Origin: Phyllobates terribilis
Lineage: Eukaryota
Length of the DNA stretch: 64,000 nt
Direction: 5' to 3'
Assembly (NCBI RefSeq): GCF_046119375.1
Contig: NW_027362771.1
Coordinates: forward strand, 585,032,001 to 585,096,000
Shown piece by piece: positions 8,516-60,419 of the stretch; positions within the stretch are counted from its first letter, which is position 1; every line of letters starts with the position of its first letter. The notes beneath the pieces are model-generated. The model was not told the origin of the DNA and searched no databases. It was given only the letters and a program-made list of their open reading frames with translations. Position numbers and translations under genes: made by a program.

Positions 8516-9128
8516 AAGCATGTGCTGCAGAGCAGGAATCCCTCAGGTCTGTGTTTCTACCCAGTAGGTCTGAGACAAATGATAACTGATGAAAAGGCAG
8601 CCCTGACAGATTCAGGTGCTAATTCCAAAATTCTGAGACTCCATAGATTATAGGGTGGATTATAGCATACCGACAGGATAATAGATACAAGTGTCTCTCC
8701 TGTATATGAAGTGTCCTGCGCGTCCCGGCGGTGCCCCAGTTTCGGCACCAGCAGCCCGTCTCGTTAGGTCACAGTGGAGCAGGCTCTCCCGTATACATTT
8801 GGGGGATGTTTCCGCTTGAACCACATTTAATTAGAGAAATGTCTCATCATTAGAGAAAGAAGCCTGTAACCCCTTGTGTCCATCTGTCAGCTCTGTCACA
8901 CGGCATTAGGATGAGGCACAAGCAGATGGCGCAGGGGGGCAACACCGCCTGCTTCACCGGGGATTTGTAAAGCTTAAGTCCTGCCATCCAGCACCGGGAC
9001 ACAACGTTACCCCGCAGAAGCCTCCTCACTCATTCTATAGGATTTCGGGGCTCACAAAACAATATTCACACCCAGGCACGTTCCACCCTCAGCAAATAAA
9101 TGTTAATTTAGTATACACCTTTCATATA

Positions 9129-11708: not shown

Positions 11709-12742
11709 TATATTTTCTGTATCCATTCTCAACAGTTTTCAAGATCTCTGCTTGCTGTCATTGCATAGAAATTCCATCATTTTTTATTACCAGATGCTAC
11801 AAACCAGTTGTGGTTACAAGTCATAGCTCTGATAACTCGGCCAGCTGGGACATCATGGTCCATACTGGGACTGTGAAAGTCAGAAGGATCAAACTGGTCT
11901 TACTGTAATGAACCATGCAGCTGTTGGCAATAAGGTCTAGAAAGTGAGCCATAAGGGAGCTCATGGAGCCTAATCATGGAAGCAGGCGATGTTTGGTAGT
12001 ACCTATGGATTTAGCATGTGATCTCCTTATACCCCTAATCAAACCACTGCCAAATATATGACAAACCACATTTCCATTCGGAAATGCCTGATCGCTTCCA
12101 CCTTACTTGGGCTCCGTAAGGTGACGATTGGGCGACTCCAGCCTAAGTTACCTTCCTATCTTATTTACTCTTCCTAAGCAGATTATATCAGACTTCCATT
12201 GCTTTTCTCCTCCCTCTATCCACTGCGTGTTTTCCTTTCTCACATTCCTTGGTTAATTATTACCTCTTTTCTGATACTGATACCATTCTGATTTAGAGGT
12301 TATGCTAATTTATCAGCTCTTCGCCGGATGTCCACAGTCAGACTTGTTCCAAGCCGCTCAACTCAGTAGAGTTTAGGGGCGGTGCTCTGGTTCTTACCCT
12401 TTAACACCTATATATCGAAATCTGCAGGTACCCCTATATTGTATATGTAGAGTATCTGCCGACCGGGAACAGAACCTGAAAGACAGGGACAAGGACAAAA
12501 ATGCATCCAAATGTGTGCTCTGTGGAAGCCGGGTCACCGTCCAAGAAGTCAATCAGAATAAACAGGAGGAAAGGAGTCAGGTAGTCCAAAAGTCAAACCA
12601 GTTAGGGCATCCAAGGGTTAATTAGGAGAGAGCACCAATTAAAAAAGCACCATGGTGTTATCCAAAAGGTACAAAATGTTTTTTTCACTTAATACTTTTA
12701 GTCAACTTTTTACTGTGGAATTACCTTTAATAACAAGCTGAA

Positions 12743-15700
12743 CACCTGAGGACACCCCCTGTAAGAATACTAGGGTTATAATACCTGAAAACGCTCCATC
12801 TAAGTACACTAGGGTTACATCACCTGAGGACACCCCCTGTAAGAATACTAGGGTTATAATACCTGAAAACGCCCCATCTAAGTACACTAGGGTTACATCA
12901 CCTGAGGACACCCCCTGTAAGAATACTAGAGTTATAATACCTGAAAATGCCCCATCTAAGTACACTAGGGTTACATCACCTGAGGACACCTCCTGTAAGA
13001 ACACTAGGGTTATAATACCTGAAAACGCCCCATCTAAGTACACTAGGGTTACATCACCTGAGGACACCTCCTGTAAGTACACTAGGGTTATAATACCTGA
13101 AAACGCCCCATCTAAGTACACTAGGGTTACATCACCTGAGGACACCTCCTGTAAGTACACTAGGGTTATAATACCTGAAAACGCCCCATCTAAGTACACT
13201 AGGGTTAGATCACCTGAGGACACCCCCTGTAAGAATACTAGGGTTATAATACCTGAAAACGCCCCATCTAAGTACACTAGGGTTACATCACCTGAGGACA
13301 CCTCCTGTAAGAATACTAGAGTTATAATACCTGAAAATGCCCCATCTAAGTACACTAGGGTTACATCACCTGAGGACACCCCCTGTAAGAACACTAGGGT
13401 TATAATACCTGAAAACGCCCCATCTAAGTACACTAGGGTTACATCACCTGAGGACACCTCCTGTAAGAACACTAGGGTTATAATACCTGAAAACGCCCCA
13501 TCTAAGTACACTAGGGTTACATCACCTGAGGACACCTCCTGTAAGTACACTAGGGTTATAATACCTGAAAACGCCCCATCTAAGTACACTAGGGTTAGAT
13601 CACCTGAGGACACCCCCTGTAAGAATACTAGGGTTATAATACCTGAAAACGCCCCATCTAAGTACACTAGGGTTACATCACCTGAGGACACCCCCTGTAA
13701 GAACACTAGGGTTATAACACCTGAAAACGCCCATCCAAGTACTCTAGGGTTAGATCATCTGAGGACACCTCCTGTAAGAACACTAGGGTTATAATACCTG
13801 AAAACGCCCCATCTAAGTACACTAGGGTTATATCACCTGAGGACACCTCCTGTAAGAACACTAGGGTTATAATACCTGAAAACACCCCATCTAAGTACAC
13901 TAGGGTTACATCACCTGAGGACACCCCCTGTAAGAATACTAGGGTTATAATACCTGAAAACACCCCATCTAAGTACACTAGGGTTACATCACCTGAGGAC
14001 ACCCCCTGTAAGAATACTAGGGTTATAATACCTGAAAACACCCCATCTAAGTACACTAGGGTTACATCACCTGAGGACACCCCCTGTAAGAACACTAGGG
14101 TTATAATACCTGAAAATGCCCCATCTAAGTACACTAGGGTTACATCACCTGAGGACACCCCCTGTAAGAACACTAGGGTTATAATACCTGAAAATGCCCC
14201 ATCTAAGTACACTAGGGTTACATCACCTGAGGACACCCCCTGTAAGAATACTAGGGTTATAACACCTGAAAACGTCCCATCTAAGTACACTAGGGTTACA
14301 TCACCTGAGGACACCCCCTGTAAGTACACTAGGGTTATAACACCTGAAAACGCCCCATCTAAGTACACTAGGGTTAGATCACCTGAGGACACCCCCTGTA
14401 AGTACACTAGGGTTATAACACCTGAAAACACCCCATCTAAGTACACTAGGGTTACATCACCTGAGGACACCCCCTGTAAGAATACTAGGGTTATAATACC
14501 TGAAAACACCCCATCTAAGTACACTAGGGTTACATCACCTGAGGACACCCCCTGTAAGAACACTAGGGTTATAACACCTGAAAACGCCCCATCTAAGTAC
14601 ACTAGGGTTACATCACCTGAGGACACCCCCTGTAAGAATACTAGGGTTATAACACCTGAAAACGCCCCATCTAAGTACACTAGGGTTAGATCACCTGAGG
14701 ACACCCCCTGTAAGTACACTAGGGTTATAATACCTGAAAACACCCCATCTAAGTACACTAGGGTTACATCACCTGAGGACACCCCCTGTAAGAATACTAG
14801 GGTTATAATACCTGAAAACGCCCCATCTAAGTACACTAGGGTTAGATCACCTGAGGACACCCCCTGTAAGTACACTAGGGTTATAATACCTGAAAACACC
14901 CCATCTAAGTACACTAGGGTTACATCACCTGAGGACACCCCCTGTAAGAATACTAGGGTTATAATACCTGAAAACACCCCATCTAAGTACACTAGGGTTA
15001 CATCACCTGAGGACACCCCCTGTAAGAATACTAGGGTTATAACACCTGAAAACGCCCCATCTAAGTACACTAGGGTTACATCACCTGAGGACACCCCCTG
15101 TAAGAATACTAGGGTTATAATACCTGAAAACGCCCCATCTAAGTACACTAGGGTTACATCACCTGAGGACACCCCCTGTAAGTACACTAGGGTTATAACA
15201 CCTGAAAACGCCCCATCTAAGTACACTAGGGTTAGATCACCTGAGGACACCTCCTGTAAGTACACTAGGGTTATAACACCTGAAAACGCCCCATCTGAGT
15301 ACACTAGGGTTAGATCACCTGAGGACACCCCCTGTAAGAACACTAGGGTTATAACACCTGAAAACGCCCCATCTAAGTACACTAGGGTTACATCACCTGA
15401 GGACACCCCCTGTAAGAATACTAGGGTTATAATACCTGAAAACGCCCCATCTAAGTACACTAGGGTTACATCACCTGAGGACACCCCCTGTAAGAATACT
15501 AGGGTTATAATACCTGAAAACACCCCATCTAAGTACACTAGGGTTACATCACGTGAGGACACCCCCTGTAAGAATACTAGGGTTATAACACCTGAAAATG
15601 CCCCATCTAAGTACACTAGGGTTAGATCACCTGAGGACACCCCCTGTAAGAATACTAGGGTTATAACACCTGAAAACGCCCCATCTAAGTACACTAGGGT

Positions 15701-18380
15701 TAGATCACCTGAGGACACCCCCTGTAAGAATACTAGGGTTATAACACCTGAAAATGCCCCATCTAAGTACACTAGGGTTACATCACCTGAGGACACCTCC
15801 TGTAAGTACACTAGGGTTATAATACCTGAAAACGCCCCATCTAAGTACACTAGGGTTACATCACCTGAGGACACCCCCTGTAAGAATACTAGGGTTATAA
15901 CACCTGAAAACGCCCCATCTAAGTACACTAGGGTTAGATCACCTGAGGACACCCCCTGTAAGAACACTAGGGTTATAACACCTGAAAACGCCCCATCTAA
16001 GTACACTAGGGTTACATCACCTGAGGACACCCCCTGTAAGAATACTAGGGTTATAATACCTGAAAATGCCCCATCTAAGTACACTAGGGTTACATCACCT
16101 GAGGACACCCCCTGTAAGAACACTAGGGTTATAATACCTGAAAACAACCCATCTAAGTACACTAGGGTAACATCACCTGAGGACACCCCTTGTAAGAATA
16201 CTAGGGTTATAACACCTGAAAACGCCCCATCTAAGTACACTAGGGTTACATCACCTGAGGACACCTCCTGTAAGAATACTAGGGTTATAATACCTGAAAA
16301 CGCCCCATCTAAGTACACTAGGGTTACATCACCTGAGGACACCCCCTGTAAGAACACTAGGGTTAGATCACCTGAAAACGCCCCATCTAAGTACACTAGG
16401 GTTACATCACCTGAGGACACCCCCTGTAAGAATACTAGGGTTATAACAGGTGAAAACGCCCCATCTAAGTACACTAGGGTTAGATCACCTGAGGACACCC
16501 CCTGTAAGAATACTAGGGTTATAACACCTGAAAACGCCCCATCTAAGTACACTAGGGTTAGATCACCTGAGGACACCTCCTGTAAGTACACTAGGCTTAC
16601 ATCACCTGAGGACACCCCCTGTCAGTACACTAGGGTTATAACACCTGAAAACGCCCCATCTAAGTACACTGGGGTTACATCACCTGAGGACACCCCCTGT
16701 AAGTACACTAGGGTTACATCACCTGAGGACACCCCCTGTAAGTACACTAGGGTGATAACAGCTGAAAAAGTCCCATCTAATTACACTAGGGTTACATCAC
16801 CTGAGGACACCCCCTGTAAGTACACTAGGGTTATAACACCTGAAAACGCCCATCCAAGTACTCTAGGGTTAGATCATCTGAGGACACCTCCTGTAAGTAC
16901 ACTAGGGTTATAACAGGTGAAAACACCCCATCTAAGTACACTAGGGTTAGATCACCTGAGGACACCCCCTGTAAGAACACTAGGGTTATAATACCTGAAA
17001 AAGCCCCATCTAAGTACACTAGGGTTACACCACCTGAGGACACCCCCTGTAAGAATACTAGGGTTATAACAGGTGAAAACGCCCCATATAAGTACACTAG
17101 GGTTAGATCACCTGAGGACACCCCCTGTAAGAACACTAGGGTTATAATACCTGAAAAAGCCCCATCTAAGTACACTAGGGTTACACCACCTGAGGACACC
17201 CCCTGTAAGAATACTAGGGTTATAACACCTGAAAATGCCCCATCTAAGTACACTAGGGTTAGATCACCTGAGGACACCCCCTGTAAGTACACTAGGGTTA
17301 TAACACCTGAAAACGCCCCATCTAAGTACACTGGGGTTACATCACCTGAGGACACCCCCTGTAAGTACACTAGGGTTATAATACCTGAAAACGCCCCATC
17401 TAAGTACACTAGGGTTACATCACCTGAGGACACCCCCTGTAAGAATACTAGGGTTATAACACCTGAAAATGCCCCATCTAAGTACACTAGGGTTAGATCA
17501 CCTGAGGACACCCCCTGTAAGTACACTAGGGTTATAACACCTGAAAACGCCCCATCTAAGTACACTGGGGTTACATCACCTGAGGACACCCCCTGTAAGT
17601 ACACTAGGGTGATAACAGCTGAAAAAGTCCCATCTAATTACACTAGGGTTACATCACCTGAGGACACCTCCTGTAAGAACAATAGGGTTATAACACCTGA
17701 AAACGCCCCATCTAAGTACACTGGGGTTACATCACCTGAGGACACCCCCTGTAAGTACACTAGGGTGATAACACCTGAAAACGCCCCATCTAAGTACACT
17801 AGGGTTACATCACCTGAGGACACCCCCTGTAAGAACACTAGGGTTATAACAGGTGAAAACGCCCCATCTAAGTACACTAGGGTTACATCACCTGAGGACA
17901 CCCCCTGTAAGAACACTAGGGTTATAACAGGTGAAAACGCCCCATCTAAGTACACTAGGGTTACATCACCTGAGGACACCCCCTGTAAGAATACTAGGGT
18001 TATAATACCTGAAAACACCCCATCTAAGTACACTAGGGTTACATCACCTGAGGACACCCCCTGTAAGAATACTAGGGTTATAACAGGTGAAAACGCCCCA
18101 TCTAAGTACACTAGGGTTAGATCACCTGAGGACACCTCCTGTAAGAATACTAGGGTTATAATACCTGAAAACGCCCCATCTAAGTACACTAGGGTTACAT
18201 CACCTGAGGACACCCCCTGTAAGAATACTAGGGTTATAACAGGTGAAAACGCCCCATCTAAGTACACTAGGGTTAGATCACCTGAGGACACCCCCTGTAA
18301 GAATACTAGGGTTATAACAGGTGAAAACGCCCCATCTAAGTACACTAGGGTAACATCACCTGAATACGCCGCTTCTAGGT
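12743..18380. repeat. Satellite of 39-bp monomers arranged as a 78-bp dimeric higher-order repeat (~145 monomers)
   Basis: Monomer A tagggttacatcacctgaggacaccccctgtaagaatac alternates with monomer B tagggttataatacctgaaaacgccccatctaagtacac. The ORF track shows a 26-aa period. Confidence 0.97.
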
Positions 18381-19745
18381 TGTGACGGCGGTGGGTGTTG
18401 ACCCACTGTGACACTGCACTAGCTTACCCTGGAGGGGCATGACTAAGTGGCTACCCAGTTTCCGCTAGAGCCTCTGATGGTGAGGATAGGCTTGGGTCAT
18501 TAGGGTAGCCACAAGGTGCCACTCCAGGGCAGAGCCCAGACCTTCAGCAATTTCCCAACGGGTCAAGTCAGAGATACCTAACCTGAAGATGCCGCCTCAA
18601 AGTACACTAGGGCTAGAACATCTGAGGACGCCCCCTCTAAGTACACTAGTGTTAGATCACCTGAAGATGCCCCCTCTAAGTACACAAGGGTTAAATCAAC
18701 TGAAGATGCCCCCTCTAAGTACACAAGGGTTAGATCACCTGAAAACGCCCCCTCTAAGTACACAAGGGTTAAATCAACTGAAGACGCCCCCTCTAAGTAC
18801 ACAAGGGTTAGATCACCTGAAGACGCCCCCTCTAAGTACACAAGGGTTAGATCACCTGAAAACGCCCCCTCTAAGTACACAAGGGTTAAATCAACTGAAG
18901 ACGCCCCCTCTAAGTACACAAGGGTTAGATCACCTGAAGACGCCCCCTCTAAGTACACTAGGGTAACATCACCTGAATACGCCGCTTCTAGGTTGTGACG
19001 GCGGTGGGTGTTGACCCACTGTGACACTGCACTAGCTTACCCTGGAGGGGCATGACTAAGTGGCTACCCAGTTTCCGCTAGAGCCTCTGATGGTGAGGAT
19101 AGGCTTGGGTCATTAGGGTAGCCACAAGGTGCCACTCCAGGGCAGAGCCCAGACCTTCAGCAATTTCCCAACGGGTCAAGTCAGAGATACCTAACCTGAA
19201 GATGCCGCCTCAAAGTACACTAGGGCTAGAACATCTGAGGACGCCCCCTCTAAGTACACTAGTGTTAGATCACCTGAAGATGCCCCCTCTAAGTACACAA
19301 GGGTTAAATCAACTGAAGATGCCCCCTCTAAGTACACAAGGGTTAGATCACCTGAAAACGCCCCCTCTAAGTACACAAGGGTTAAATCAACTGAAGATGC
19401 CCCCTCTAAGTACACAAGGGTTAGATCACCTGAAGACGCCCCCTCTAAGTACACAAGGGTTAAATCAACTGAAGATGCCCCCTCTAAGTACACAAGGGTT
19501 AAATCAACTGAAGACGCCCCCTCTAAGTACACAAGGGTTAGATCACCTGAAGACGCCCCCTCTAAGTACACAAGGGTTAGATCACCTGAAAACGCCCCCT
19601 CTAAGTACACAAGGGTTAAATCAACTGAAGACGCCCCCTCTAAGTACACAAGGGTTAGATCACCTGAAGATGCCCCCTCTAAGTACTCTAAGGTTAGGTC
19701 AAGTGAGGACGCCCCCTCTAAGTACACTAGAGTTAGATCACCTCA
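18349..19745. repeat. 613-bp tandem duplication of a ~210-bp unique insert plus variant 39-bp monomers
   Basis: The segment tgtgacggcggtgggtgttg...cagagatacc occurs at ~18383 and ~18996 (offset 613). It is followed by 39-bp variants cctctaagtacacaagggttagatcacctgaagacgccc. Confidence 0.9.
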
Positions 19746-19917
19746 GGCTGACTAAGGGTAAATGATTATAACTAGTGGTGCTATAATTAGATTATATATT
19801 AAGGTTAATTATATTGTGTATTGGAAGTAGGAATTTTAATATACCCTAACTGGATCTTATATGAGCTGTGATATTGCCAGTTTTCAGCATTATATAATTG
19901 AGTTGCAACCACACATA

Positions 19918-21541
19918 CAGTACAGACCAAAAGTTTGGACACACCTTTAAAGATTTTTCTGTATTTTCATGACTATGAAAATTGTACACTCACACTGAAG
20001 GCATCAAAACTATGAATTAACACATGTGGAATTATATACTTAACAAAAAAGTGTGAAACAACTGAAAATATGTCTTATATTCTAGGTTCTTCAAAGTAGC
20101 CACCTTTTGCTTTGATGACTGCTTTGCACACTCTTGGCATTCTCTTGATGAGCTTCAAGAGGTAGTCACCGGAAATGGTTTTCACTTCACAGGTGAGCCC
20201 TGTCAGGTTTAATAAGTGGGATTTCTTGCCTTATAAATGGGGTTGGGACCATTAGTTGTGTTGTGCAGAAGTCTGGTTGATACACAGCTGATAGTCCTAC
20301 TGAATAGACTGTTAGAATTTGTATTATGGCAAGAAAAAAGCAGCTAAGTAAAGAAAAACGAGTGGCCATCATTACTTTAAGAAATGAAGGTCAGTCAGTC
20401 CGAAAAATTGGGAAAACTTTGAAAGTGTCCCCAAGTGCAGTTGCAAAAACCATCAAGCGCTACAAAGAAACTGGCTCACATGAAGACCGCCCCAAGAAAG
20501 GAAGACCAAGAGTCACCTCTGCTTCTGAGGATAAGTTTATCCGAGTCACCAGCCTCAGAAATCGCAGGTTAACAGCAGCTCAGATTAGAGACCAGGTCAA
20601 TGCCACACAGAGTTCTAGCAGCAGACACATCTCTTCAACAACTGTTAAGAGGAGACTTTGTGCAGCAGGCCTTCATGGTAAAATAGCTGCTAGGAAACCA
20701 CTGCTAAGGACAGGCAACAAGCAGAAGAGACTTGTTTGGGCTAAAGAACACAAGGAATGGACATTAGACCAGTGGAAATCTGTGCTTTGGTCTGATGAGT
20801 CCAAATTTGAGATCTTTGGTTCCAACCACCGTGTCTTTGTGCGACGCAGAAAAGGTGAACGGATGGACTCTACATGCCTGGTTCCCACCGTGAAGCATGG
20901 AGGAGGAGGTGTGATGGTGTGGGGGGGCTTTGCTGGTGACACTGTTGGGGATTTATTCAAAATTGAAGGCATACTGAACCAGCATGGCTACCACAGCATC
21001 TTGCAGCGGCATGCTATTCCATCCGGTTTGCGTTTAGTTGGACCATCATTTATTTTTCAACAGGACAATGACCCCAAACAAACCTCCAGGCTGTGTAAGG
21101 GCTATTTGACCAAGCAGGAGAGTGATGGGGTGCTACGCCAGATGACCTGGCCTCCACAGTCACCAGACCTGAACCCAATCGAGATGGTTTGGGGTGAGCT
21201 GGACCGCAGAGTGAAGGCAAAAGGGCCAACAAGTGCTAAGCATCTCTGGGAACTCCTTCAAGATTGTTGGAAGACCATTTCCGGTGACTACCTCTTGAAG
21301 CTCATCAAGAGAATGCCAAGAGTGTGCAAAGCAGTCATCAAAGCAAAAGGTGGCTACTTTGAAGAACCTAGAATATAAGACATATTTTCAGTTGTTTCAC
21401 ACTTTTTTGTTAAGTATATAATTCCACATGTGTTAATTCATAGTTTTGATGCCTTCAGTGTGAATGTACAATTTTCATAGTCATGAAAATACAGAAAAAT
21501 CTTTAAATGAGAAGGTGTGTCCAAACTTTTGGTCTGTACTG
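19918..21541 (+). mobile_element. Full-length Tc1-like transposon, DD38E (Intruder-type)
   Basis: TA TSDs at 19916-17 and 21542-43. ~265-bp TIRs (19918-20179 and 21274-21541) start CAGTACAGACCAAAAGTTTGGACACACC. They differ by one 6-bp indel and very few substitutions. Confidence 0.95.
20326..21378 (+). CDS. Tc1-family transposase, 350 aa, uninterrupted, DD38E
   Basis: Paired-like HTH with GRPR, plus WSDE, VKHGGG-WG, QQDND and SPDLNPIE motifs. There are 38 residues between the second catalytic D and the E (counted). Confidence 0.93.
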   Translation: MARKKQLSKEKRVAIITLRNEGQSVRKIGKTLKVSPSAVAKTIKRYKETGSHEDRPKKGRPRVTSASEDKFIRVTSLRNRRLTAAQIRDQVNATQSSSSRHISSTTVKRRLCAAGLHGKIAARKPLLRTGNKQKRLVWAKEHKEWTLDQWKSVLWSDESKFEIFGSNHRVFVRRRKGERMDSTCLVPTVKHGGGGVMVWGGFAGDTVGDLFKIEGILNQHGYHSILQRHAIPSGLRLVGPSFIFQQDNDPKQTSRLCKGYLTKQESDGVLRQMTWPPQSPDLNPIEMVWGELDRRVKAKGPTSAKHLWELLQDCWKTISGDYLLKLIKRMPRVCKAVIKAKGGYFEEPRI

Positions 21542-22668
21542 TATATCTGAGTGTTGTTAAAAAGTGGATTGACCATATAACACCCAGATTTAAGAGGAGC
21601 AGCCGGTATGACTACTGCAAGTCCTGCTGCTAATGTCGGGTGGGCTGCGGTTAGCAGAGTAGATCAGCTGCTGTCAGCGCCTGCACAGCTAATGATGGTG
21701 TTCAGGCGGGTGGAAAGGAATTATTGCTTTAATACAGGCTGCACTACTTAAATCTGGGTGTTATATGGTCAATCCACTTTTTACGAAAATTCAGATATGC
21801 ATGTGCTTGTAACTCAGTTATATAATTCTGCAAAATGGCAACATCACAGCTCATACTAGATCCAGTTAGGAAATAATGCCACATATTTTTGCCTAATTAA
21901 TTATATACATACATATACCATATGTACGTATTCACAACCAGTGGCATAACTAAAGTCCCATGGGCCCCGATGCAAACGTTGAACCTGGGCCCCCATCTCC
22001 ATATTGATCATATGTAAGGGCCATTGTAGAGTTCTAGATCCTATAAAGACATACAGGTGCATCTCACTGAATTAGAATACCATAAAAAAAAGTTAATTTA
22101 TTTCAGTTCTTCAATACAAAAAGTGAAACTCATATATTATATAGAGTCATTACAGACAGAGTGATCTATTAAGCATTTAAAAAGGTGCCTTAGGCTGTTT
22201 CAGTAGGCTCCACAATCATTGGGAAGACTGCTGACTGAAATAAACTGAACGTTTTGATGATATTCTAATTTAGTGAGATGCACCTGTAGATGTAATAATG
22301 TTCCCCATCCTGTCCCTTTTTTGTAATAAGGTCCCCAGTCCTGGCCTCATTCTGTAATAATGTCCCCAGTCCTGGCCCTCATCTTGTTATTATGTCTCTC
22401 ATCCCAGAATCCCCTTCTTGTTATAATATACCCTATCCTTGGCCTCTTCCAGATATAATGTCCCCCATCCTGGGCATTTTCCTGGTATAATGTTCCCCTA
22501 CCTGGTATAATTTCCTCCATTCTGGACCATTCCTGTAACAATGTCCCCCATTCTGGACCCTTCCTGTAACAATGTTCCCCTTCCTGGTATAATGTGCCTC
22601 ATCATGGGCCCCCATCCTATAATAATGTCCGCCATCCTGGACTCCATTCTGGTATAATGACACCTATC

Positions 22669-48641: not shown

Positions 48642-50167
48642 ATCACATTAATGACCTGAAAAAAAAAGGGTTAAACACCCAGCCGACGCGTTTCAGGCCC
48701 ATTGCATAGAGCAGCACGTAGTACAAGGTCGACATATAATCCATATGAAAAAGAAAGAACAGCTGCAGTCCGATCTATGGAAAAGCAACATTGACCGTAG
48801 AAAAAAGCGGCTCTCGCCACCTAGAACAAAATAGCTCTTAGCTAAGTCCTTACGGGCGCAGTCAGACACCGTATAGATAGGACCGCAGTGCACGGACTGG
48901 CTGGCGGCTCTCCCGGCCTGAGCGTGACTGCTTCATGTATTTCTACGCAGCTGTCACACTGTAGTCTGGAGAGCAGACTTCCAGTCCGTGCACTGCAGTG
49001 CGATCCTTGTCTGAGACATACGGCTGTCTGATTCATCCCTTAAAATGCAACCTGTAGGGCACACATCACTTTTGGCATTTGGCCCTCTATACTACATGTG
49101 CAGGGATACAATTCATATACCATTTAATATGGTAAACAGAATCATGATTACAACTTTTCCTATTAGGGGTTGTCCAGGCTTGGGGTGCAAGCATTCAGTT
49201 ACTCTGTGACTGCCGACTTGTTAATCCTCACACTGCGCGCGGTCAGGACTCTTTGGTACGGGCAAGCTCGTGACCGCAAGTATGTGATTTGTAGACTTCC
49301 AGCCACGTTACGACTAGATGTGTCCGGCGTCACTCAGTACATCTAGTTGGCATGTGACCGCATATATGCCAATCCCATACTTGCAGGCACACGCCTACCC
49401 ACTCCTTACTCAAGGTTTTGACAAGGTGGGGTCCCGTTCAGTGATCTGATCTGCAGATATTTGAGTCGGGGTGTCGCAGTACTTACAGCACCAGTGAAAG
49501 GGCTGGCTGATCATCTAGGTAGCCAAACCAGCCCCCTTCTCTGAATGCATTTGCCATGACGACAGTGGCTACTGCACCTTTTGGTTCTTGGGTTATGTCT
49601 GAATCCTGGAGGTGAGAAATGAAGATCTGAAAGCTGAGATAATGGATGCGCATAAGTAAGTTGTATTTTTTTGTGTTTTTTTTTTTTTTATTTTTTTTAA
49701 TTTAAGGTTACAGTCACACATTTGTTTCACAGACCAGGTATAGAATGTGATTTTTATACCCTCAGTGGGGTCTCCTGACCTGAACTCGAAATCCCCCTAT
49801 CCTGGGAATAGACCGTAATTTCTGGACTGGCCACTGTTTTCCTGACCTAACCTCGCCAGCCTCGTGGATGTGGCTGCAGCTGGCAGGGGCTCCGCCGCCA
49901 GTCCGGCATCATGGGCCATAAAACATGGGCCTATGAGTGCCCTAAATATACAACAAATTTATGCCCAACATATAGTAACTTGTATTATTGCAGAATGAGT
50001 GTAAAGGTAAATGACATGGCGGTATAATTTATGAAAAAAATAACATTCGGAAATAGTTCTGTCCAATTGGCGTTACTTTAACATAAAAGGGGCAACAGAA
50101 TCCCTGCCTGGGGTGGTGAGCACGTGTGGACAGAGCCAACCTTGGGTAATGGAGATTCCCTGGACTA

Positions 50168-51428
50168 GGCATGGTGGAGCAGGAGCTACTGGCCATGAAG
50201 AAGAACTAGGTATGGCAGAGAAGTGACTACTGGGCATGAAGAAGGACTTAGGCATGGTGGAGCAGTGACTACCGGCCATGAAAAAGAACTAGGCATGGTG
50301 GAGCAGTGACTACTGGCCATGACGGAGCAGTGACTACTGGCCATGAAGAAGGACAGGGCATGACGCAGCAGTGACTACCGGTCATGAAGAAGGATTAGGC
50401 ATGGTGGAGCAGTGACTACCGGCCATGAAGAAGGACTAGGCATGGTGGAGCATTGACTCCTGGCCATGAAGAAGGACTAGGCATGGCGAAGCAGTGACTA
50501 CCGGCCATGAAAAAGGACTAGGCATGCTGGAGCAGTGCCTACTGGCCATGAAGAAGGACTGGGCATGACGCAGCAGTGACTACTGGTCATGAAGAAGGAT
50601 TAGGCATGGTGGAGCAGTGACTACCGGCCATGAAGAAGGACTGGGCATGACGGAGCAGTGACTACTGGCCATGAAGAAGGACTGGGCATGACGGAGCAGT
50701 GACTACTGGCCATGAAGAAGGACTGGGCATGACGGAGCAGTGACTATTGGCCATGACGGAGCAGTGACTACTGGCCATGAAGAAGGACAGGGCATGACGC
50801 AGCAGTGACTACCGGTCATGAAGAAGGATTAGGCATGGTGGAGCAGTGACTACCGGCCATGAAGAAGGACTAGGCATGGTGGAGCATTGACTCCTGGCCA
50901 TGAAGAAGGACTAGGCATGGCGAAGCAGTGACTACCGGCCATGAAAAAGGACTAGGCATGCTGGAGCAGTGCCTACTGGCCATGAAGAAGGACTGGGCAT
51001 GACGCAGCAGTGACTACTGGTCATGAAGAAGGATTAGGCATGGTGGAGCAGTGACTACCGGCCATGAAGAAGGACTGGGCATGACGAAGCAGTGACTACT
51101 GGGCATGACGGAGCAGTGACTACTGGCCATGAAGAAGGACTGGGCATGACACAGCAGTGACTACCGGCCATGAAGGAGGACTGGGCATGACGGAGCAGTG
51201 ACTACTGGCCATGAAGAAGGACTGGGCATGACGGAGCAGTGACTACTGGCCATGAAGAAGGATTAGGCATGGTGGAGCAGTGACTACCGGCCATGAAGAA
51301 GGACTAGGCATGGCGAAGCAGTGACTATTGGCCATGAAAAAGGACTAGACATGGTGGAGGAGTGACTACCGGTCATGAAGAAGGACTAGGCATGATGGAA
51401 CAGTGACTACCGGCCATGAAGGACTAGG
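50168..51428. repeat. 41-bp tandem array (~30 units) with a 434-bp higher-order duplication
   Basis: Unit gaagaaggactaggcatggtggagcagtgactaccggccat. The diagnostic variant ggacagggcatgacgcagc occurs at 50351 and 50785. Confidence 0.93.
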
Positions 51429-52099: not shown

Positions 52100-52132
<33 letters not shown>

Positions 52133-52151
52133 TGTATATGTATGTATGTAT

Positions 52152-53058
52152 TGTAAGGCAGCGCTAGTCATCATACTGGGGGTAACTCGCTTCGCTGCGT
52201 CAATCAATGCACACGTGCAATGTCTTTACCTTTTTCACACAGTGTTGCAGTTTATTATGGCACTTCATAAACCGCTGTTCACACACAGTTCATCTTAGTC
52301 CGCCACCGGCAGGTTTACACACAAACAATTCATGAGCCAAGTGGCACACCGGCCCACTTGCTCCAGGGTACAGCTTACGGCAAGGTAATAAAGTAGCAAT
52401 GTTCATATCACAATGTCCATATAGCACCGGGTATTACCTTTGCCAGGTATAGCTGTCTCAGTCCGTTACTCTGCCACCACTGTGGCTCTGCGGCTTCCCA
52501 GGTAGGGGTCTCCAGCCGTCGTTCCCTCAAAGGCCACTGACATCCACACAGGATCCAGGCTCTGCCTTCCAGGAGTCTTACTCAAGCCGGCTCTCCCTCA
52601 AAGGCCACTGACATCCGCACAGGATCCAGGCTCGACCTTTCAGGTACCAGGCTTCACTTCAAAGCCGCTGCCTTCCAAGGCCACTAGCATCCGCACAGGA
52701 TCTAGTCTTTGCCTTCAGGCTGCCAGGCTTCACGGTATCCCGGTATCCCACACACATGGGGAACAGGCCTCACGCCTCTCACACCGAACACACCTGTCTC
52801 AAATTAAGCAGGTTTATATATGCTGTGCACAGACAGCCTCATACTGACAGGACCTTGCTGATGTCACAGTCATGTGATCAGTCAGCTGTGTGTATAGGTC
52901 CTGTGTGCTGTCCCAGTCATGTATACAGAGCTTTACTGTGCATGCAGGACCTGGGTGATGTCACAGTCATGTGACCAGTCAGATAAAGGGGAAGGTACAT
53001 GGTCCAGTAAGCACATCCTGGACCATTTACAGTAATGCTAGCAACCTGCTGCATTACA
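52152..53058 (-). repeat. 3' LTR (907 bp)
   Basis: TG...CA ends. Minus-strand TATATAAA (~52812-52820) and AATAAA (52251-52256). Confidence 0.95.
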
Positions 53059-53076
53059 TATCCCCCCTCTCTGTTC
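53059..53076 (-). other. Polypurine tract
   Basis: Minus strand GAACAGAGAGGGGGGATA immediately precedes the 3' LTR start TGTAATG. Confidence 0.85.
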
Positions 53077-53159
53077 AAACTTGTGGGGTTGAACACATAA
53101 TATACACAATAACATTATAACCCCCAGCTCACATATAGACCATGAACTTTACAATTGTG

Positions 53160-55883
53160 CTACTCAGCCCCTGGAACCTTAGTCAATGACATTAGCCCAT
53201 TCCTTAGGGACCTACCATTTGTCACTGTCACTGACTTCGTCAGGTCACCTTTCCGGGTTGTAACTTTGTCAGGTCTCCCCCGCTCCCAGCGGTCAATCAA
53301 AACCCTGTCAGGTCTTCCCCGCTCCCAGCGGTCAATACAGCAGCGCGACTCGCATGCCCCGGTATCTAAGGTCCGGTTCGACTCCGTACTGTCCCGTCCT
53401 CTATTGGGTCGTTTGTATGGGCTGCTCAAACCGGAGTTACTGGAGGTCTCACTACCTCTAAACCCACGCCCACTACTCTCAGGACATCCTAAAAGGTCCC
53501 TAACTTCAGCTGTAGCTGTTCTGTTATTTAGGCGGCCCTTTCTCTGTCGGGTCTCACTATTTCTAGACGGCTTCCATCTTCTGCTGCTCAGATGATGCTG
53601 TCTATCTACTCGCAGTCTAGCGAGATTCAATTGTTCTACCTCCTGCAGGCAGGTCACTCGGTACTCAATCAGCATGCGTATATATTCTAGGCTTTCTTCT
53701 GTTCCTACCGCGGAAAAGGACACCATGCCGTCTTTGTCTGGTATCCAGTCCTGTTGATCACGTGGACTGCTTACTTTCACCACACCAGACTTCTTGACCA
53801 TCATCTGCATGGCTCGACCGCTTCTCCCAATGAGCTTTCTCACCAGAACATGAGGCACCCGGATGACCTCTTCACGCATACTGTGAGCTTTTCTCCTAAG
53901 CTCCAGTTGTCTAACGGCTTGTTCCGTCTTCAACAGGAGAAACCGCTTCGTGCGAACACATCGCCAGTGCATGTCACTTAGGATAGCCACCCTCTTCACT
54001 GTGACTTTGGTCGTGGACAGGACCACCAGCTGTTTAGTTTCTGAGGTCAAGTAGACCTTACAGGCTCCCACAGCCTTCTTAAACTCTTCATGCACGGACT
54101 CACGGGTGCATTCTTCCCTCAAGTCCTCGGGTACTTCTACGAGGCACTTGTACCGAGACGTTTCGGTCTCACCAGTGGTTTCCAGACGATCAACCAGCTC
54201 AGGTTTCAGGAACAACTGACTTCCAGCTTCTTCACCCTGGATGCTTCCCCTGAGCTGACTCACAGCTACCACTTCACAACTTTTCGTCTTGACCACCTCC
54301 ACTTCACCTTTATCTTCCAACACCATACTTTTAGCTCTCCTCAGGTCCTCCTTCTCAGGGTCTAAGGGAGTAAGTGCAACTTGTTTGCCTTTTCCCTTCT
54401 CCAAGGAGACCTCGTTCACCACGTGACACTTTGCTAGGCGACCTTTGAGCTCTAAAACTTCTCCTTCCAGCTCAGTTACTCGCCTCTCAGCGGCCCGTCT
54501 CTGAAGCTCTTCCTGCTTCAACTGCTCTTCCAGCAGCAGAGCTCTCTCAGACCTCTCCGTCTCCAATGTGCCCACTCGGCGCTCAATAGCCAGTCTCTCA
54601 CGCTTCTCTTGCGTCCACTGGGTTTGTAGCAACTCCTTGAGCTCCCTGATCTCGGCTCTTACTTCCACCGAATCATCCAAGCTCGCATCACTCGAGGAGG
54701 TATCTGTTTCACACCTCCCCTCACCAGCGGCCAACTCCTGGCCCTGGTCTGTGGCTTCTCTGACGGACTCCTCCATCTTTTTCCGCTCAGCTTCCATCTT
54801 GCTGACTGTTTCTTTAAGGCACGTCTCCGCCCTCTGGAGAGTATCACAGGACATCTGTAGCTCCTTCACCTGAGCTTCCAGATCTAGGGTCTTTCCACGG
54901 AGACCATCATTCTCCTCACGGGTGTCTTGCAGAGTGGTCTCAACCACTTGGCGCACTTGCTCTGCACCCGCCTTATCCTCCTCTAGTTTTTCCTTCACCT
55001 TGAGGAGATCTTCATAATCTCTCTTACTCTGTTGCAGTTCCCTACTGCGTTCACTACACACCTTCTTGGAGTCACACAGCTCCTGGTTGAGCTGTTTGCG
55101 CAGTCGTTCTAGGATTTGTTCACGTCCAGAAACACCATCCTGCCGCGCCTCCTTCTCAAGCTTCAACTGCAAAACCTCTTCCTTGATTTTGCGGCGGTCC
55201 TCCTTAATTGCGTAGAACATTTCCTTCCAATGGTTAATTTCCGCGTTGCTTCCCTCCACGTCTCGCTGCCAGTTCCTCATAACCTGGTATATTTTCTGCT
55301 GTTCAGACTCCAGGTTCAGCTGGTCTGCGGACACGTCACTCTGACACTGTTGCCTGATAGGCTCCAGTTCCTGGTCATGACTGGCCACCTTCTCTTTCGG
55401 GTCTGTCAGATCCTGATCCGTCAGTCTCAGTACCGTACCGGAGGTTGCTACTGGAAACGTCACCTCCTCTTCTACCTCTAAAGGAGGATCCACACTTGAA
55501 GCATAGGCACACAGTACTACATTCTTTTTATTTTCATTTTCAGCCAAGTCTACAGGAGCAACCTTTTTGTGGCCCTTGCGCCGTCTACGAGATGGGGACT
55601 CTCTCACCTCGTCTAGCCCCTCCTGACTGAACTCACTTTTTACTTTCATAGTGTCACAGTCAGCTACGGGGTCTGTGTCACTACCCATGGTGTTGTGGAC
55701 TAACAGGTCACCTCCCACTTTGACTTCACCCCCTTCTACTGGAGTTACCCCGTTATCAACGGTCACATTGTCATTTTTAGGAGGCACCAACCCACCAACA
55801 GTAACAATTTTCAGTTTTCTACACTCCACACTCGTGAAAATCCACCCCTTTTTTAGACTCCGCCCCCTTTTTAACAACCACAC
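53160..55883 (-). CDS. Chimeric cargo ORF: coiled coil (cingulin-like) + FXR1-derived KH0/KH2/C-terminal fragment; 907 codons open (842 aa from the first ATG at 55688)
   Basis: Open with no introns. aa ~577-762 align with recalled FXR1 (VPEDLRE, FKKAVGAC, TVKRV.ILSDMH, K.IGRSG...KSGVV, DGMV, LQEVEQL). aa ~831-846 DSTESNRTLDTGACES matches FXR1 DNTESDQTADTDASES. aa ~284-385 align without gaps to the recalled cingulin rod. Confidence 0.85.
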   Translation of the reverse strand: MWLLKRGRSLKKGWIFTSVECRKLKIVTVGGLVPPKNDNVTVDNGVTPVEGGEVKVGGDLLVHNTMGSDTDPVADCDTMKVKSEFSQEGLDEVRESPSRRRRKGHKKVAPVDLAENENKKNVVLCAYASSVDPPLEVEEEVTFPVATSGTVLRLTDQDLTDPKEKVASHDQELEPIRQQCQSDVSADQLNLESEQQKIYQVMRNWQRDVEGSNAEINHWKEMFYAIKEDRRKIKEEVLQLKLEKEARQDGVSGREQILERLRKQLNQELCDSKKVCSERSRELQQSKRDYEDLLKVKEKLEEDKAGAEQVRQVVETTLQDTREENDGLRGKTLDLEAQVKELQMSCDTLQRAETCLKETVSKMEAERKKMEESVREATDQGQELAAGEGRCETDTSSSDASLDDSVEVRAEIRELKELLQTQWTQEKRERLAIERRVGTLETERSERALLLEEQLKQEELQRRAAERRVTELEGEVLELKGRLAKCHVVNEVSLEKGKGKQVALTPLDPEKEDLRRAKSMVLEDKGEVEVVKTKSCEVVAVSQLRGSIQGEEAGSQLFLKPELVDRLETTGETETSRYKCLVEVPEDLREECTRESVHEEFKKAVGACKVYLTSETKQLVVLSTTKVTVKRVAILSDMHWRCVRTKRFLLLKTEQAVRQLELRRKAHSMREEVIRVPHVLVRKLIGRSGRAMQMMVKKSGVVKVSSPRDQQDWIPDKDGMVSFSAVGTEESLEYIRMLIEYRVTCLQEVEQLNLARLRVDRQHHLSSRRWKPSRNSETRQRKGRLNNRTATAEVRDLLGCPESSGRGFRGSETSSNSGLSSPYKRPNRGRDSTESNRTLDTGACESRCCIDRWERGRPDRVLIDRWERGRPDKVTTRKGDLTKSVTVTNGRSLRNGLMSLTKVPGAE

Positions 55884-56154
55884 CGGCAGGGTAATTTTTA
55901 CACAAAAAATCTGCAGTAGTCTTAGGACTCAGTTCACAACATCTCTTACCACCTCCCCGGGCACTCTGGGACAACACTGGCGCCCCCGGAGAGTCCATAG
56001 AATGGTCCACTGCAGCCATTCCATATGGTGCCCACAGCTCCTGCGGTTCCTGCACCATGTCCAGAAAAAGTTTCCCAAATACCTGCTCCGGTCCCAACCG
56101 GTCCTTCAACCGCTCAATAGCTCCAGACAGATCTGCTGCTTTGCTCACAGCCAT
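55819..56154 (-). CDS. 111-aa upstream ORF overlapping the cargo ORF in another frame (possible N-terminal part of it)
   Basis: ATG at 56154 lies ~230 nt after the 5' LTR. It overlaps the main ORF across A/G homopolymer runs. Confidence 0.45.
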   Translation of the reverse strand: MAVSKAADLSGAIERLKDRLGPEQVFGKLFLDMVQEPQELWAPYGMAAVDHSMDSPGAPVLSQSARGGGKRCCELSPKTTADFLCKNYPAGVVVKKGAESKKGVDFHECGV

Positions 56155-56363
56155 CGCGGTACACTGTTCACACTAGCACTTCATCGCTCTCCCGGAAAAA
56201 TTTTCGTGGCCCCACCAAGCCACCGCAAAACGGGATTTGAGTGCGATGAGAATCTTCGCAACCCCGCCGAGTTGCCGCAAGATGCTTTATCCACACTCGT
56301 CGTCCTGTGCCGTTGCCCCTAGCAACCGGGGTTGTCGTTGCCACTAGCAACCGGGCTGCCGTT

Positions 56364-56381
56364 GCCCGCACTCTCGAACCA
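56364..56381 (-). other. Primer-binding-site-like sequence (atypical)
   Basis: TGGTTCGAGAGTGCGGGC starts 2 nt after the end of the 5' LTR. Confidence 0.55.
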
Positions 56382-56383
56382 TA

Positions 56384-57292
56384 TGTAAGGCAGCGCTAGT
56401 CATCATACTGGGGGTAACTCGCTTCGCTGCGTCAATCAATGCACACGTGCAATGTCTTTACCTTTTTCACACAGTGTTGCAGTTTATTATGGCACTTCAT
56501 AAACCGCTGTTCACACACAGTTCATCTTAGTCCGCCACCGGCAGGTTTACACACAAACAATTCATGAGCCAAGTGGCACACCGGCCCACTTGCTCCAGGG
56601 TACAGCTTACGGCAAGGTAATAAAGTAGCAATGTTCATATCACAATGTCCATATAGCACCGGGTATTACCTTTGCCGGGTATAGCTGTCTCAGTCCGTTA
56701 CTCCGCCACCACTGTGGCTCTGCGGCTTCCCAGGTAGGGGTCTCCAGCCGTCGTTCCCTCAAAGGCCACTGACATCCACACAGGATCCAGGCGCTGCCTT
56801 CCAGGACTCTTACTCAAGCCGGCTCTCCCTCAAAGGCCACTGACATCCGCACAGGATCCAGGCTCGACCTTTCAGGTACCAGGCTTCACTTCAAAGCCGC
56901 TGCCTTCCAAGGCCACCAGCATCCGCACAGGATCTAGTCTTTGCCTTCAGGCTGCCAGGCTTCACGGTATCACGGTATCCCACACACACATGGGGAACAG
57001 GCCTCACGCCTCTCACACCGAACACACCTGTCTCAAATTAAGCAGGTTTATATATGCTGTGCACAGACAGCCTCATACTGACAGGACCTTGCTGATGTCA
57101 CAGTCATGTGATCAGTCAGCTGTGTGTATAGGTCCTGTGTGCTGTCCCAGTCATGTATACAGAGCTTTACTGTGCATGCAGGACCTGGGTGATGTCACAG
57201 TCATGTGACCAGTCAGATAAAGGGGAAGGTACATGGTCCAGTAAGCACATCCTGGACCATTTACAGTAATGCTAGCAACCTGCTGCATTACA
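56384..57292 (-). repeat. 5' LTR (909 bp)
   Basis: Differs from the other LTR by about six substitutions and one CA indel (by eye). Confidence 0.95.
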
Positions 57293-57363
57293 GTATATAT
57301 ATATGAACAGTATAGGAACATCACAGGCTGTGTATATAGATATGTATGTGTATGTGTATATAT

Positions 57364-58657: not shown

Positions 58658-58793
58658 NNNNNNNNNNNNNNNNNNNNNNNNNNNNNNNNNNNNNNNNNNN
58701 NNNNNNNNNNNNNNNNNNNNNNNNNNNNNNNNNNNNNNNNNNNNNNNNNNNNNNNNNNNNNNNNNNNNNNNNNNNNNNNNNNNNNNNNNNNNN
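58658..58793. other. Assembly gap (136 N)
   Basis: Run of N. Confidence 1.
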
Positions 58794-60419
58794 GCACCCC
58801 TATTAATCTTCAGCTTATTGTTTTATATAAATTGGTGTTTTTGCACCAGCTATTTCAGCTTGATATATGTAATAACTGTTGGACACAGTAATGGTTCTGC
58901 CTTGAAATGAGGTTTATTGTACTAACAGAAAATGTGCAATCTGCATTCAAACAAAATTTGACAGGTGCATAAGTATGGGCACCTCACCAGAAAAGTGACA
59001 TTAATATTAAGTAGATCCTCCTTTTGCAAAAATAACAGCCTCTAGTCGCTTCCTGTAGCTTTTAATGAGTTCCTGGATCCTGGATGAAGGTATTTTTGAC
59101 CATTCCTCTTTACAAAACAATTCCAGTTCAGTTAAGTTTGATGGTCGCCGAGCATGGACAGCCCTCTTCAAATGATCCCACAGATGTTCAATGATATTCC
59201 GGTCTGGGGACTGGGATGGCCATTCCAGAACATTGTAATTGTTCCTCTGCATGAATGACTGAGTAGATTTGGAGCGGTGTTTTGGATCATTGTCTTGCTG
59301 AAAGATCCATCCCCTGCGTAACTTCAACTTTATCACCGATTCTTGAACATTATCGTCAAGAATCTGCTGATACTGAGTGGAATCCATGCGTCCCTCAACT
59401 TTAACAAGATTCCCGGTGCCGGCATTGGCCACACAGCCCCAAAGCATGATGGAACCTCCACCAAATTTTACTGTGGGTAGCAAGTGTTTTTCTTGGAATG
59501 CTGTGTTTTTTTGCCGCCATGCATAACGCCTTTTTGTATGACCAAACAACTCAATCTTGGTTTCATCAGTCCACAGGACCTTCTTCCAAAAAGAAATTGG
59601 CTTCTCCAAATGTGCTTTTGCATACCTCAGCCGACTCTGTTTGTGGCGTGCTTGCAGAAACGGCTTCTTTCGCATCACTCTCCCATACAGCTTCTCCTTG
59701 TGCAAAGTGCGTTGTATAGTTGACCGATGCACAGTGACACCATCTGCAGCAAGTTGATGCTGCAGCTCTCTGGAGGTGGTCTGAGGATTGTCCTTGACTG
59801 ATCTCACCATTCTTCTTCTCTGCCTTTCTGATGTTTTTCTTGGCCTGCCACTTCTGGCCTTAACAAGAACTGTCCCTGTGTTCTTCCATTTCCTTACTAT
59901 GTTCCTCACAGTGGAAACTGACAGGTTAAATCTCTGAGACAGCTTTTTGTATCCTTCCCCTGAACAACTATGTTGAATAACCTTTGTTTTCAGATCATTT
60001 GACAGTTGTTTTGAGGAGCCCATGATGCCACTCTTCAGTGGAGATTCAAACAGGAGAACAACTTGCAAGTGGCCACTTTAAGTAGCTTTTCTCATGATTG
60101 CATACACCTGGTTATGGAGTTCAAAGCTCAATGAGGTTACAAAACCAAAAAAAGTGCTGTAGTAAGTCAGTAAAAAGCAGGTAGGAGTATTTAAAACAAG
60201 AAAATGATAAGGGTGCCCATACTTATGCACCTGTCAAATTTTGTTTGAATGCAGATTGCACATTTTCTGTTAGTACAATAAACCTCATTTCAAGGCCGAA
60301 ACATTACTGTGTCCAACAGTTATTACATATATCAAAGTGAAATAGCTGTTGCAAAAACACCAATTTTTATAAAACATTAAGCTTAAGATTAATAGGGGTG
60401 CCCAAACTTTTTCATATAA

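Follow-up and report, generated by a model that had tools for sequence, protein, structure and literature searches.

What kind of mobile element carries pieces of host genes in its one reading frame and none of the enzymes needed to move? This question is raised by positions 52152-57292 of a 64,000-nucleotide stretch of the poison frog Phyllobates terribilis genome (contig NW_027362771.1, positions 585,032,001 to 585,096,000), which we call the window. These positions hold a complete, real, and recently inserted long terminal repeat (LTR) retroelement without enzymes of its own. Its single gene is a mosaic, in which an N-terminal part specific to the element continues in frame into pieces of processed host messenger RNAs (mRNAs). 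The evidence as a whole gives us good confidence in a non-autonomous LTR family of dendrobatoid frogs whose mosaic gene was built serially from host mRNAs and which is probably mobilized in trans; that its protein would aid its own RNA is a more tentative part of this account. We saw the family in four copies, two of them in P. terribilis: the window copy and a copy (L001) on chromosome-scale scaffold JBJBSG010000003.1 of GCA_046119375.1. The other two are in Anomaloglossus baeobatrachus, at the loci of the "FXR1-like" protein P0107 (L002) and of its paralogue P0131 (L003), which lie on different chromosomes.

The window copy is framed by the following features.

52152..57292, minus strand: the whole non-autonomous LTR retroelement, 5141 bp, defined by its LTR pair, 4-bp duplication, primer-binding-site-like (PBS-like) stretch, and polypurine tract (PPT).
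56384..57292, minus strand: 5' LTR (element sense), 909 nt, TG..CA.
52152..53058, minus strand: 3' LTR, 907 nt, TG..CA.
52148..52151 and 57293..57296, no strand: both arms of the GTAT target-site duplication, which reads ATAC in element sense.
52510..52720, minus strand: three tandem repeats of 71-76 nt within the LTR, found by repeat search; also at 56742-56952 in the other LTR.
53061..53072, minus strand: PPT, a 12-nt purine run 2 nt upstream of the 3' LTR.
56364..56381, minus strand: PBS-like stretch, beginning with TGG (56379-56381) 2 nt past the 5' LTR.

The original prediction of a complete and recent LTR element is upheld by these features. The two LTRs, both TG..CA and in the same orientation, are 99.12% identical and differ by 6 substitutions and one 2-nt indel (907 versus 909 nt); the 4-bp duplication, the PPT, and the PBS-like TGG are all present. 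In element sense the 5' LTR has a TATA-like motif near nt 239 and AATAAA near nt 805, both as motif matches alone. Coding strand, purine tract, and TGG all place the element on the minus strand. The window GTAT duplication is embedded in a GT/GTAT microsatellite and is therefore weak evidence by itself. Duplications of 4 bp were found in all four copies and are all different: ATAC (window, element sense), CTAC (L001), CTGC (L002), and ATAT (L003); of these, CTAC and CTGC are surrounded by unique sequence and ATAT by an (AT)n run. The PPT and the first LTR bases are kept in four of four copies and in both frog families. The PBS-like stretch is conserved in L001, L002, and L003, and the window copy deviates from the common form at a few positions. 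As to surroundings, the window copy sits in GT/GTAT/AT simple repeat (52100-52151, 57293-57360) and the L003 copy in its (AT)n run; two insertions of four in simple repeats may indicate a target preference.

The 3.3-kb interior of the window element is made up of a 229-nt leader, a 3.0-kb gene, and ~100 nt before the 3' LTR. As 3.0 kb of the 3.3 kb is a single gene, there is no room for pol. Pfam found no gag, protease, reverse transcriptase (RT), RNase H, or integrase domain in any copy, and the earlier statement that the element has no retroviral motifs thus stands, with no pol hidden in the interior. The gene and its parts are listed here in coding order.

53160..56154, minus strand: the element's single gene, 998 codons in its intact sister; the window copy has one frameshift and no premature stop otherwise.
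55433..56154, minus strand: N-terminal part specific to the element, ~240 codons; mostly disordered by prediction and bearing a conserved Arg-rich patch; recognized by Anomaloglossus homology.
54729..55432, minus strand: coiled coil derived from host cingulin (CGN), assembled from parts of seven consecutive exons without their introns.
54429..54680, minus strand: second predicted long helix or coiled coil (AlphaFold helix, residues 493-576 of the intact protein).
54231..54359, minus strand: probable fragment of LONP1 (mitochondrial Lon protease), from just before the AAA+ module, with marginal scores.
53343..54167, minus strand: FXR1-derived part with KH0, a KH2-type KH domain, the C-terminal core helix, and tail, without the Tudor domains and KH1.
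53910..54152, minus strand: KH0 domain (Pfam KH_9 7e-26; PDB 4qvz 8e-20).
53670..53870, minus strand: type I KH domain aligned to FXR1 KH2, GXXG loop kept.

A stop-free open reading frame (ORF) of 2.7 kb had been reported for the window. Its 907 codons are real, but they cover only part of the 3.0-kb gene, which is frameshifted once here. Our search of the protein collection returned P0001 (XP_073527937.1), a 998-residue "uncharacterized protein" of P. terribilis with an NCBI protein-coding annotation. It is 97% identical across the whole of the window's long frame, and a second window frame farther upstream, with its ATG at 56154, matches the first 107 residues of P0001 at 99% identity. L001, the locus of this protein, holds a second full copy of the element (8774-14007) with its own LTR pair (98.8% identical), unrelated flanks, a clean CTAC duplication, and a 998-codon frame without a stop. 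The two Phyllobates copies are 98.9% identical through the interior. By DNA alignment, 29 substitutions and one frameshifting indel separate the window gene from the intact L001 gene, and the window gene is otherwise unbroken. The remaining two copies are broken as well (one break or more in L003, two or more in L002), so that three of the four carry a damaged gene.

It could be argued that the intact XP_073527937.1 is a domesticated host gene at a single locus, with an LTR as its promoter, and that the window copy is a dead duplicate; the NCBI annotation of the intact copy as protein-coding agrees with this. However, both copies have LTR pairs, target duplications, and unrelated flanks of their own, the LTRs of both Phyllobates copies are only 0.7-1.2% diverged, and the Anomaloglossus relatives are likewise dispersed and young. 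We regard domestication as extremely improbable. Nor is the element confined to one copy, a point raised with the original prediction: all four insertions, in two species, carry the FXR1 part. The "uncharacterized protein" and "FXR1-like" gene models in these poison-frog genomes are transposon genes.

Where, then, do the parts of the gene come from? The C-terminal third had been ascribed to FXR1, and this proved correct. The Pfam matches in the gene are all of the FMRP family, with KH_1 and the FXR C-terminal core weaker than KH_9 (7e-26), and the PDB search returned a solved FMRP N-terminal structure (8e-20) and an FMRP KH1-KH2 structure (5e-12). The best named relatives in the protein collection are amphibian FXR1 proteins (2e-60), with FXR2 and FMR1 lower. 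A neighbor-joining tree places the four element proteins in one clade (96% bootstrap) that joins FXR1 (79%) and not FXR2 or FMR1. The alignment of the Phyllobates gene with FXR1, at 37% identity, sets in where KH0 starts (about residue 122), passes over KH1, and then takes in KH2, the core helix, and part of the tail. An AlphaFold model based on an FXR-family alignment gave predicted local distance difference test (pLDDT) values above 90 over both KH folds, and Foldseek matched FMRP KH0 at a root mean square deviation of 1.1 A and 49% identity and FMRP KH1-KH2 at 8e-09. Pfam found no Agenet or Tudor_FRX1 match in the Phyllobates gene. Since the Tudor domains are absent and the KH0-KH1-KH2 series is incomplete, the gene is an FXR1-derived fragment rather than an FXR1 gene. 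The FXR1 part is, at the protein level, a gap-free stretch resembling complementary DNA (cDNA); the host FXR1 gene spans 164 kb.

The central segment, earlier said to resemble cingulin, is cingulin. Dendrobatid cingulins matched the gene at 2e-53 in the protein search, and BLASTP against P. terribilis cingulin gave two collinear blocks of 43-55% identity. When the element DNA was compared with the host cingulin gene (L004) by blastn, seven consecutive rod exons matched at 77-97% identity. Three exon-exon junctions could be read directly; all are exact, and one spans a 6.3-kb intron. These results confirm that the cingulin part derives from a spliced host mRNA. Some of the exons are only partly present, so internal deletions have occurred as well, and the match is limited to ~237 residues of the rod, with neither head, complete rod, nor tail.

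A third donor probably lies between these two. At 54231-54359, a stretch of 43 residues has 21 identical to human LONP1, including a run of eight. In a phmmer search against PDB, LONP1 chains were returned with expectation values of 0.006-0.02, and NCBIfam TIGR00763 "lon" matched the same positions at 0.035, which are marginal scores. We consider it probable from this resemblance that the stretch comes from LONP1. The predicted helix at residues 493-576 had no significant match to cingulin or to the linker of the Anomaloglossus genes described below, and it is possibly a diverged upstream part of the LONP1-like piece. In the AlphaFold model, two long helices of ~220 and ~85 residues lie upstream of the KH folds.

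The N-terminal part is of a different nature. Its pLDDT is low, and no Pfam or PDB relative was found for these ~240 residues. An exhaustive HMMER search of 1.84 billion representative proteins gave 0 matches to the first 111 residues of P0001, and a word-indexed search with residues 1-245 returned the protein itself alone. It had been proposed that the only cargo of the element is host-derived. This is true of the remainder, a host mosaic save for the helix at 54429..54680, to which no source was assigned, but the first ~240 codons are element-specific and shared with the Anomaloglossus elements.

It is these Anomaloglossus relatives that allow the order of events to be read. L002 holds an LTR element at 7530-12747 (698-nt LTRs, 98.7% identity between the two, CTGC duplication), and L003 holds one at 7464-12747 that is 95.3% identical to it. 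Across the four independent insertions, LTR pairs are 98.7-99.1% identical. The Anomaloglossus "FXR1-like" genes run from an N-terminal part through tandem repeats and a linker to an FXR1 segment, again without Tudor domains. Their N-terminal parts are homologous to that of the Phyllobates gene (36-41% identity by tblastn), and their FXR1 segment, which includes KH1, aligns collinearly with residues 126-567 of host FXR1 (51% identity, 2 gaps). Thus KH0, KH1, and KH2 are all found in the Anomaloglossus copies, and KH0 and KH2 without KH1 in the Phyllobates copies. No cingulin or Lon-like piece was found in the L002 and L003 copies, and the Phyllobates linker before KH0 is not significantly similar to its Anomaloglossus counterpart. 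Conservation between the two frog families extends to the PBS region, leader hairpins, PPT, N-terminal coding part, and first LTR bases; beyond those bases the LTRs cannot be aligned. By these sequence similarities, all of the elements share common descent across two frog families.

The original prediction had two spliced host mRNAs fused by template switching. The cDNA-like nature of the pieces stands, but the capture was serial, because the Anomaloglossus elements carry the FXR1 part and no cingulin, and there is a probable third donor in LONP1. As the FXR1 piece is common to elements of both frog families, it was acquired first. The comparison supports a history in which FXR1 was captured once, before the element lineages parted, cingulin was added later, and KH1 was lost in the Phyllobates line. 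The LONP1 fragment was probably also added after FXR1.

Several other properties of the Anomaloglossus copies should be mentioned. Both are intronic insertions, one in an acyltransferase gene and the other in a kinase/RabGAP-TBC gene, and share the orientation of the host gene. The NCBI "FXR1-like" models at these loci span 10-16 kb despite a contiguous coding sequence. Their N-terminal part contains a 12-residue Lys/Gly-rich tandem repeat (L002 8640-8990; L003 8590-9000) that differs in copy number between L002 and L003 and is absent from the Phyllobates gene. At ~9000-9500 of L003, and in the equivalent of L002, we noticed by eye a Cys/His cluster and a motif pair resembling a retroviral-type aspartic protease with an altered catalytic triad; neither found support in Pfam (E up to 10) or PDB. 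The stretch with the protease-like pair is missing from the Phyllobates copies.

How old are these events? The two LTRs of the window copy have diverged by 0.66%, and those of the other three copies by 0.9-1.3%. Synonymous divergence between the cingulin genes of P. terribilis and Dendrobates tinctorius is 0.286 over 474 codons, of which the window value is about 2%. Assuming an LTR rate close to the silent rate, the insertions have ~2-5% of the age of the split between these two species. The window insertion is a young one. As for when cingulin was captured, all three of the residues examined that are specific to dendrobatids are in the dendrobatid state in the element. It is closer to the P. 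terribilis than to the D. tinctorius exons in five of the six longer matching segments and in a short one of 29 nt, and 23 sites agree with P. terribilis alone compared to 12 with D. tinctorius alone (p = 0.09). Residue states, segment similarity, and site counts together suggest that cingulin was captured around or soon after the Phyllobates/Dendrobates divergence. The cingulin part has accumulated 60 private changes on the element branch, compared to 12-23 on the host branches; evolution of the captured copy is thus several times faster.

Given a family without enzymes, how does it move? Four independent integrations, the lack of enzymes in every copy, and the conserved cis signals all argue for mobilization in trans, as had been proposed. 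RT and integrase would be supplied by an autonomous element that recognizes the conserved leader, PBS, and PPT, and the host pieces would have entered through recombination or template switching with co-packaged host mRNAs. We consider these two steps, taken jointly, very likely.

The leader is the most distinctive of the candidate signals.

56203..56352, minus strand: structured leader, with two GTTGC-loop-GCAAC hairpins followed by two hairpin modules (5-bp stem, G-rich 8-nt loop).

The modules occur in tandem, 2-5 per copy, with a conserved G-rich 8-nt loop. In the window and loci searched, the module motif is confined to the elements (0 expected by chance) and absent elsewhere. Among the 14 modules in four copies, compensatory double changes affect four of the five stem pairs, and 92.5% of module-stem cells are paired, compared to 27-43% in slid-partner controls. 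Folding of the whole leader was no more stable than that of shuffles (z = 0.41), so that only the small hairpin modules are supported, by covariation. No Rfam family matched the element at gathering scores. The hairpins are a plausible packaging or dimerization signal, or a plausible binding site for the element's own protein. Relative to window positions 56203-56278, the L001 leader (9787-9952) has a ~90-nt duplication that takes the modules from two to four, and module number therefore varies within the species. A sub-threshold Rfam match to SCARNA7, located in the flank, was taken as chance.

This leads to the question of what the protein may do. It could act as a factor that oligomerizes through its coiled coils, binds RNA through its KH domains, and forms a ribonucleoprotein (RNP) on the RNA that encodes it. 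Such an RNP would favor the stability of the element RNA or its entry into helper particles, a role analogous to that of L1 ORF1p or the Gag nucleocapsid. That the protein has been retained because it helps the element's own RNA is a tentative proposal, drawn from its domains and their conservation. A fuller version is more doubtful still: that a host-built protein of FXR1 KH domains and cingulin/Lon helices replaced the structural protein, has been kept under selection for tens of millions of years, and binds the hairpin leader as a Gag/ORF1p substitute or a shield against silencing. The original prediction had likewise drawn a parallel to L1 ORF1p and Gag-like chaperones. The architecture is indeed alike, but there is no ORF1p or Gag homology in Pfam or PDB.

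If the protein matters to the element, selection should be visible in the gene. Between the Phyllobates and Anomaloglossus elements, the proportion of replacement differences (pN) in KH0 is 0.23 and that of silent differences (pS) 0.64, with a ratio of nonsynonymous to synonymous rates (dN/dS) of 0.19 (bootstrap 0.10-0.39). In KH2, pN is 0.33 and pS 0.76, and the second N-terminal block has a dN/dS of 0.63 (0.38-1.04). These substitution patterns indicate that the KH module, KH0 most clearly, is under purifying selection within the element lineage.

It is also possible to see the host pieces as neutral hitch-hikers, with the protein idle and the frame open either because the copies are young or because an open frame shields the RNA from decay. 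Several observations favor this view and weigh against ours. The sister copies are not clearly non-neutral: dN/dS is 0.58 for the window versus L001 (9 silent and 18 replacement changes among 27 differences) and 0.75 for L002 versus L003 (39 differences), neither clearly below 1, so that the dN/dS test proposed with the original prediction was passed by KH0 between lineages and not by sister copies. Against the host gene, the cingulin part is almost neutral (pN 0.15-0.16, pS 0.14-0.24), whereas dN/dS is 0.13 between host cingulins, and any constraint there would be on a helix and an open frame and not on sequence. The N-terminal bootstrap range reaches 1.04, three of four copies are broken, and the between-lineage dN/dS values are rough because synonymous sites are saturated. 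Further points count against mobilization in trans and the proposed protein role. No helper was found in the window, whose large ORFs (two Tc1/mariner transposases and a satellite) include no RT or integrase frame; the window and loci contain no tRNA genes with which the PBS-like stretch could be compared for a partner; the RNA-binding and oligomerizing role is read from domain identity alone; and only two copies per species were seen. On the other hand, neutral passengers are difficult to reconcile with KH0 and KH2 having far fewer replacement than silent changes between the frog lineages, with KH folds and a GXXG loop kept at 37-51% identity to FXR1, and with a 998-codon stop-free frame in one copy. 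We consider idle cargo unlikely.

The extent of silent change between the two element lineages raises another question. It is saturated and far exceeds the host value for P. terribilis and D. tinctorius, the sole host comparison, and the excess may reflect either faster evolution of retro-copied sequence or old parallel lineages. One could instead suppose a defective provirus, that is, a gene-transducing virus of the gag-onc type that spread with a helper and entered the two frog lineages separately. The 4-bp duplications, the fusion of an N-terminal element part to host cDNA, the structured leader, and the contrast between element pS of 0.64-0.76 (saturated) and host dS of 0.29 (P. terribilis/D. 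tinctorius) would all fit. Yet no env, capsid, or other viral domain is present in any copy, the clade of the element is not assignable, and faster evolution of retro-copies, as seen in the 60 versus 12-23 cingulin changes, explains the divergence equally well. A virus of this kind is very unlikely.

The choice of domains can also be read as directed at the host, with a truncated FXR1 mimic disturbing FXR1/FMRP RNPs or the silencing and translation control linked to them. Of FXR1, the gene has retained KH0, KH2, and the C-terminal core helix but not the Tudor domains, its KH domains are under selection, and it has gained helices predicted to oligomerize. At 37% identity to FXR1, however, partner binding is uncertain and the interaction is a conjecture, and such a role leaves the addition of the cingulin and LONP1 pieces unexplained. 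We think an anti-host factor decidedly unlikely, and return here to the non-autonomous family whose protein would act on its own RNA.

For plants and transforming retroviruses, the capture of genes by LTR elements has ample documentation; in vertebrate germlines it is, to our knowledge, rare. Our literature search turned up no LTR element described as containing FXR1 or cingulin. The original prediction knew of no family of this sort, but close analogues exist in maize Bs1, crocodilian endogenous retroviruses (ERVs), and gag-onc fusions, and the frog element is thus an addition to a known kind, the gene-transducing non-autonomous LTR elements. Acutely transforming retroviruses are replication-defective and helper-dependent, with a gag-onc fusion and loss of pol. 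The frog element similarly fuses an N-terminal element segment in frame to host cDNA and lacks pol, with a helper dependence that is inferred. Gag-onc viruses are, however, somatic, short-lived, infectious, and selected for transformation, whereas the frog family resides in the germline, has persisted for long, and carries no growth-control gene as cargo. Mouse ETn (with MusD) and VL30 and plant LARD and TRIM elements have LTRs, PBS, and PPT and are moved in trans by a related autonomous family. The frog element, with its LTRs, PPT, PBS-like stretch, and probable mobilization in trans, resembles them, but they have no long conserved host-derived frame. With L1 ORF1p the frog protein shares, as a working analogy, a coiled coil followed by an RNA-binding module encoded by a mobile RNA; the element class and the origin of the domains differ, and Pfam found no ORF1p domains.

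Bs1 is perhaps the closest case. As outlined in PMC13317346, which cites Jin & Bennetzen 1994 and Elrouby & Bureau 2001, 2010, it is an RT-less LTR element with a hybrid frame from three host genes acquired by successive transductions. To judge from that outline, both elements are non-autonomous and RT-less, with a single hybrid frame of several host-gene pieces and the element's own coding remainder (PMC13317346). Compared to Bs1 as described there, the frog element is from an animal, its donors are RNA-binding, junctional coiled-coil, and probably protease genes, at least four dispersed young copies occur in two frog families with measurable purifying selection on the KH domains, and no recognizable gag remnant was found in it. 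The crocodilian CrocERV29 and CrocERV31 captured KIT-ligand and nectin3 mRNAs, and the captured frame is reported to be under purifying selection; these ERVs keep gag-pol, with nectin3 replacing env and KITLG added without domain loss (PMC4299795). They resemble the frog element as vertebrate germline LTR elements that carry an intronless host mRNA copy, occur in several copies, and share the capture among related hosts. They differ in that each carries one near-complete host coding sequence, whereas the frog element is free of enzymes and fuses fragments of two or three genes.

What makes the frog family notable is that it resides in a vertebrate germline, persists in two frog families, and carries an RNA-binding cargo under selection, and that its series of captures is readable. 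The steps include exact splice junctions, the order of donors (FXR1, then cingulin and probably LONP1), the loss of KH1, and a surviving intermediate in the sister frog family. This raises the idea that non-autonomous elements may evolve RNP proteins of their own from host genes. Should the fuller version of the proposal given above be true, nature would here provide an example of host genes giving rise de novo to the RNP protein of a retroelement.

Finally, the window and L001 contain other repeats. A 41-nt satellite of ~27 copies, with a 434-nt higher-order period, occupies 50162-51421, 700 bp from the window element. A second satellite (12743-18363 and 18581-19500) has a 78-nt unit with a 39-nt half-unit, ~72 copies, and 94% matches, and it gives rise to long ORFs (up to 967 codons) that are spurious and whose Pfam matches have no meaning. 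A Tc1/mariner-type transposon at 19913-21546 has terminal inverted repeats of ~270 nt and a 350-codon transposase frame (HTH_Tnp_Tc3_2, DDE_3), and a copy of it that is 96.7% identical adjoins the sister element in L001 (14982-16611). A second Tc1/mariner transposase frame, of 353 codons (HTH_SB, HTH_Tnp_Tc3_2, DDE_3), lies on the minus strand at 59007-60068, just downstream of a run of N (masked sequence or a gap) at 58658-58793.

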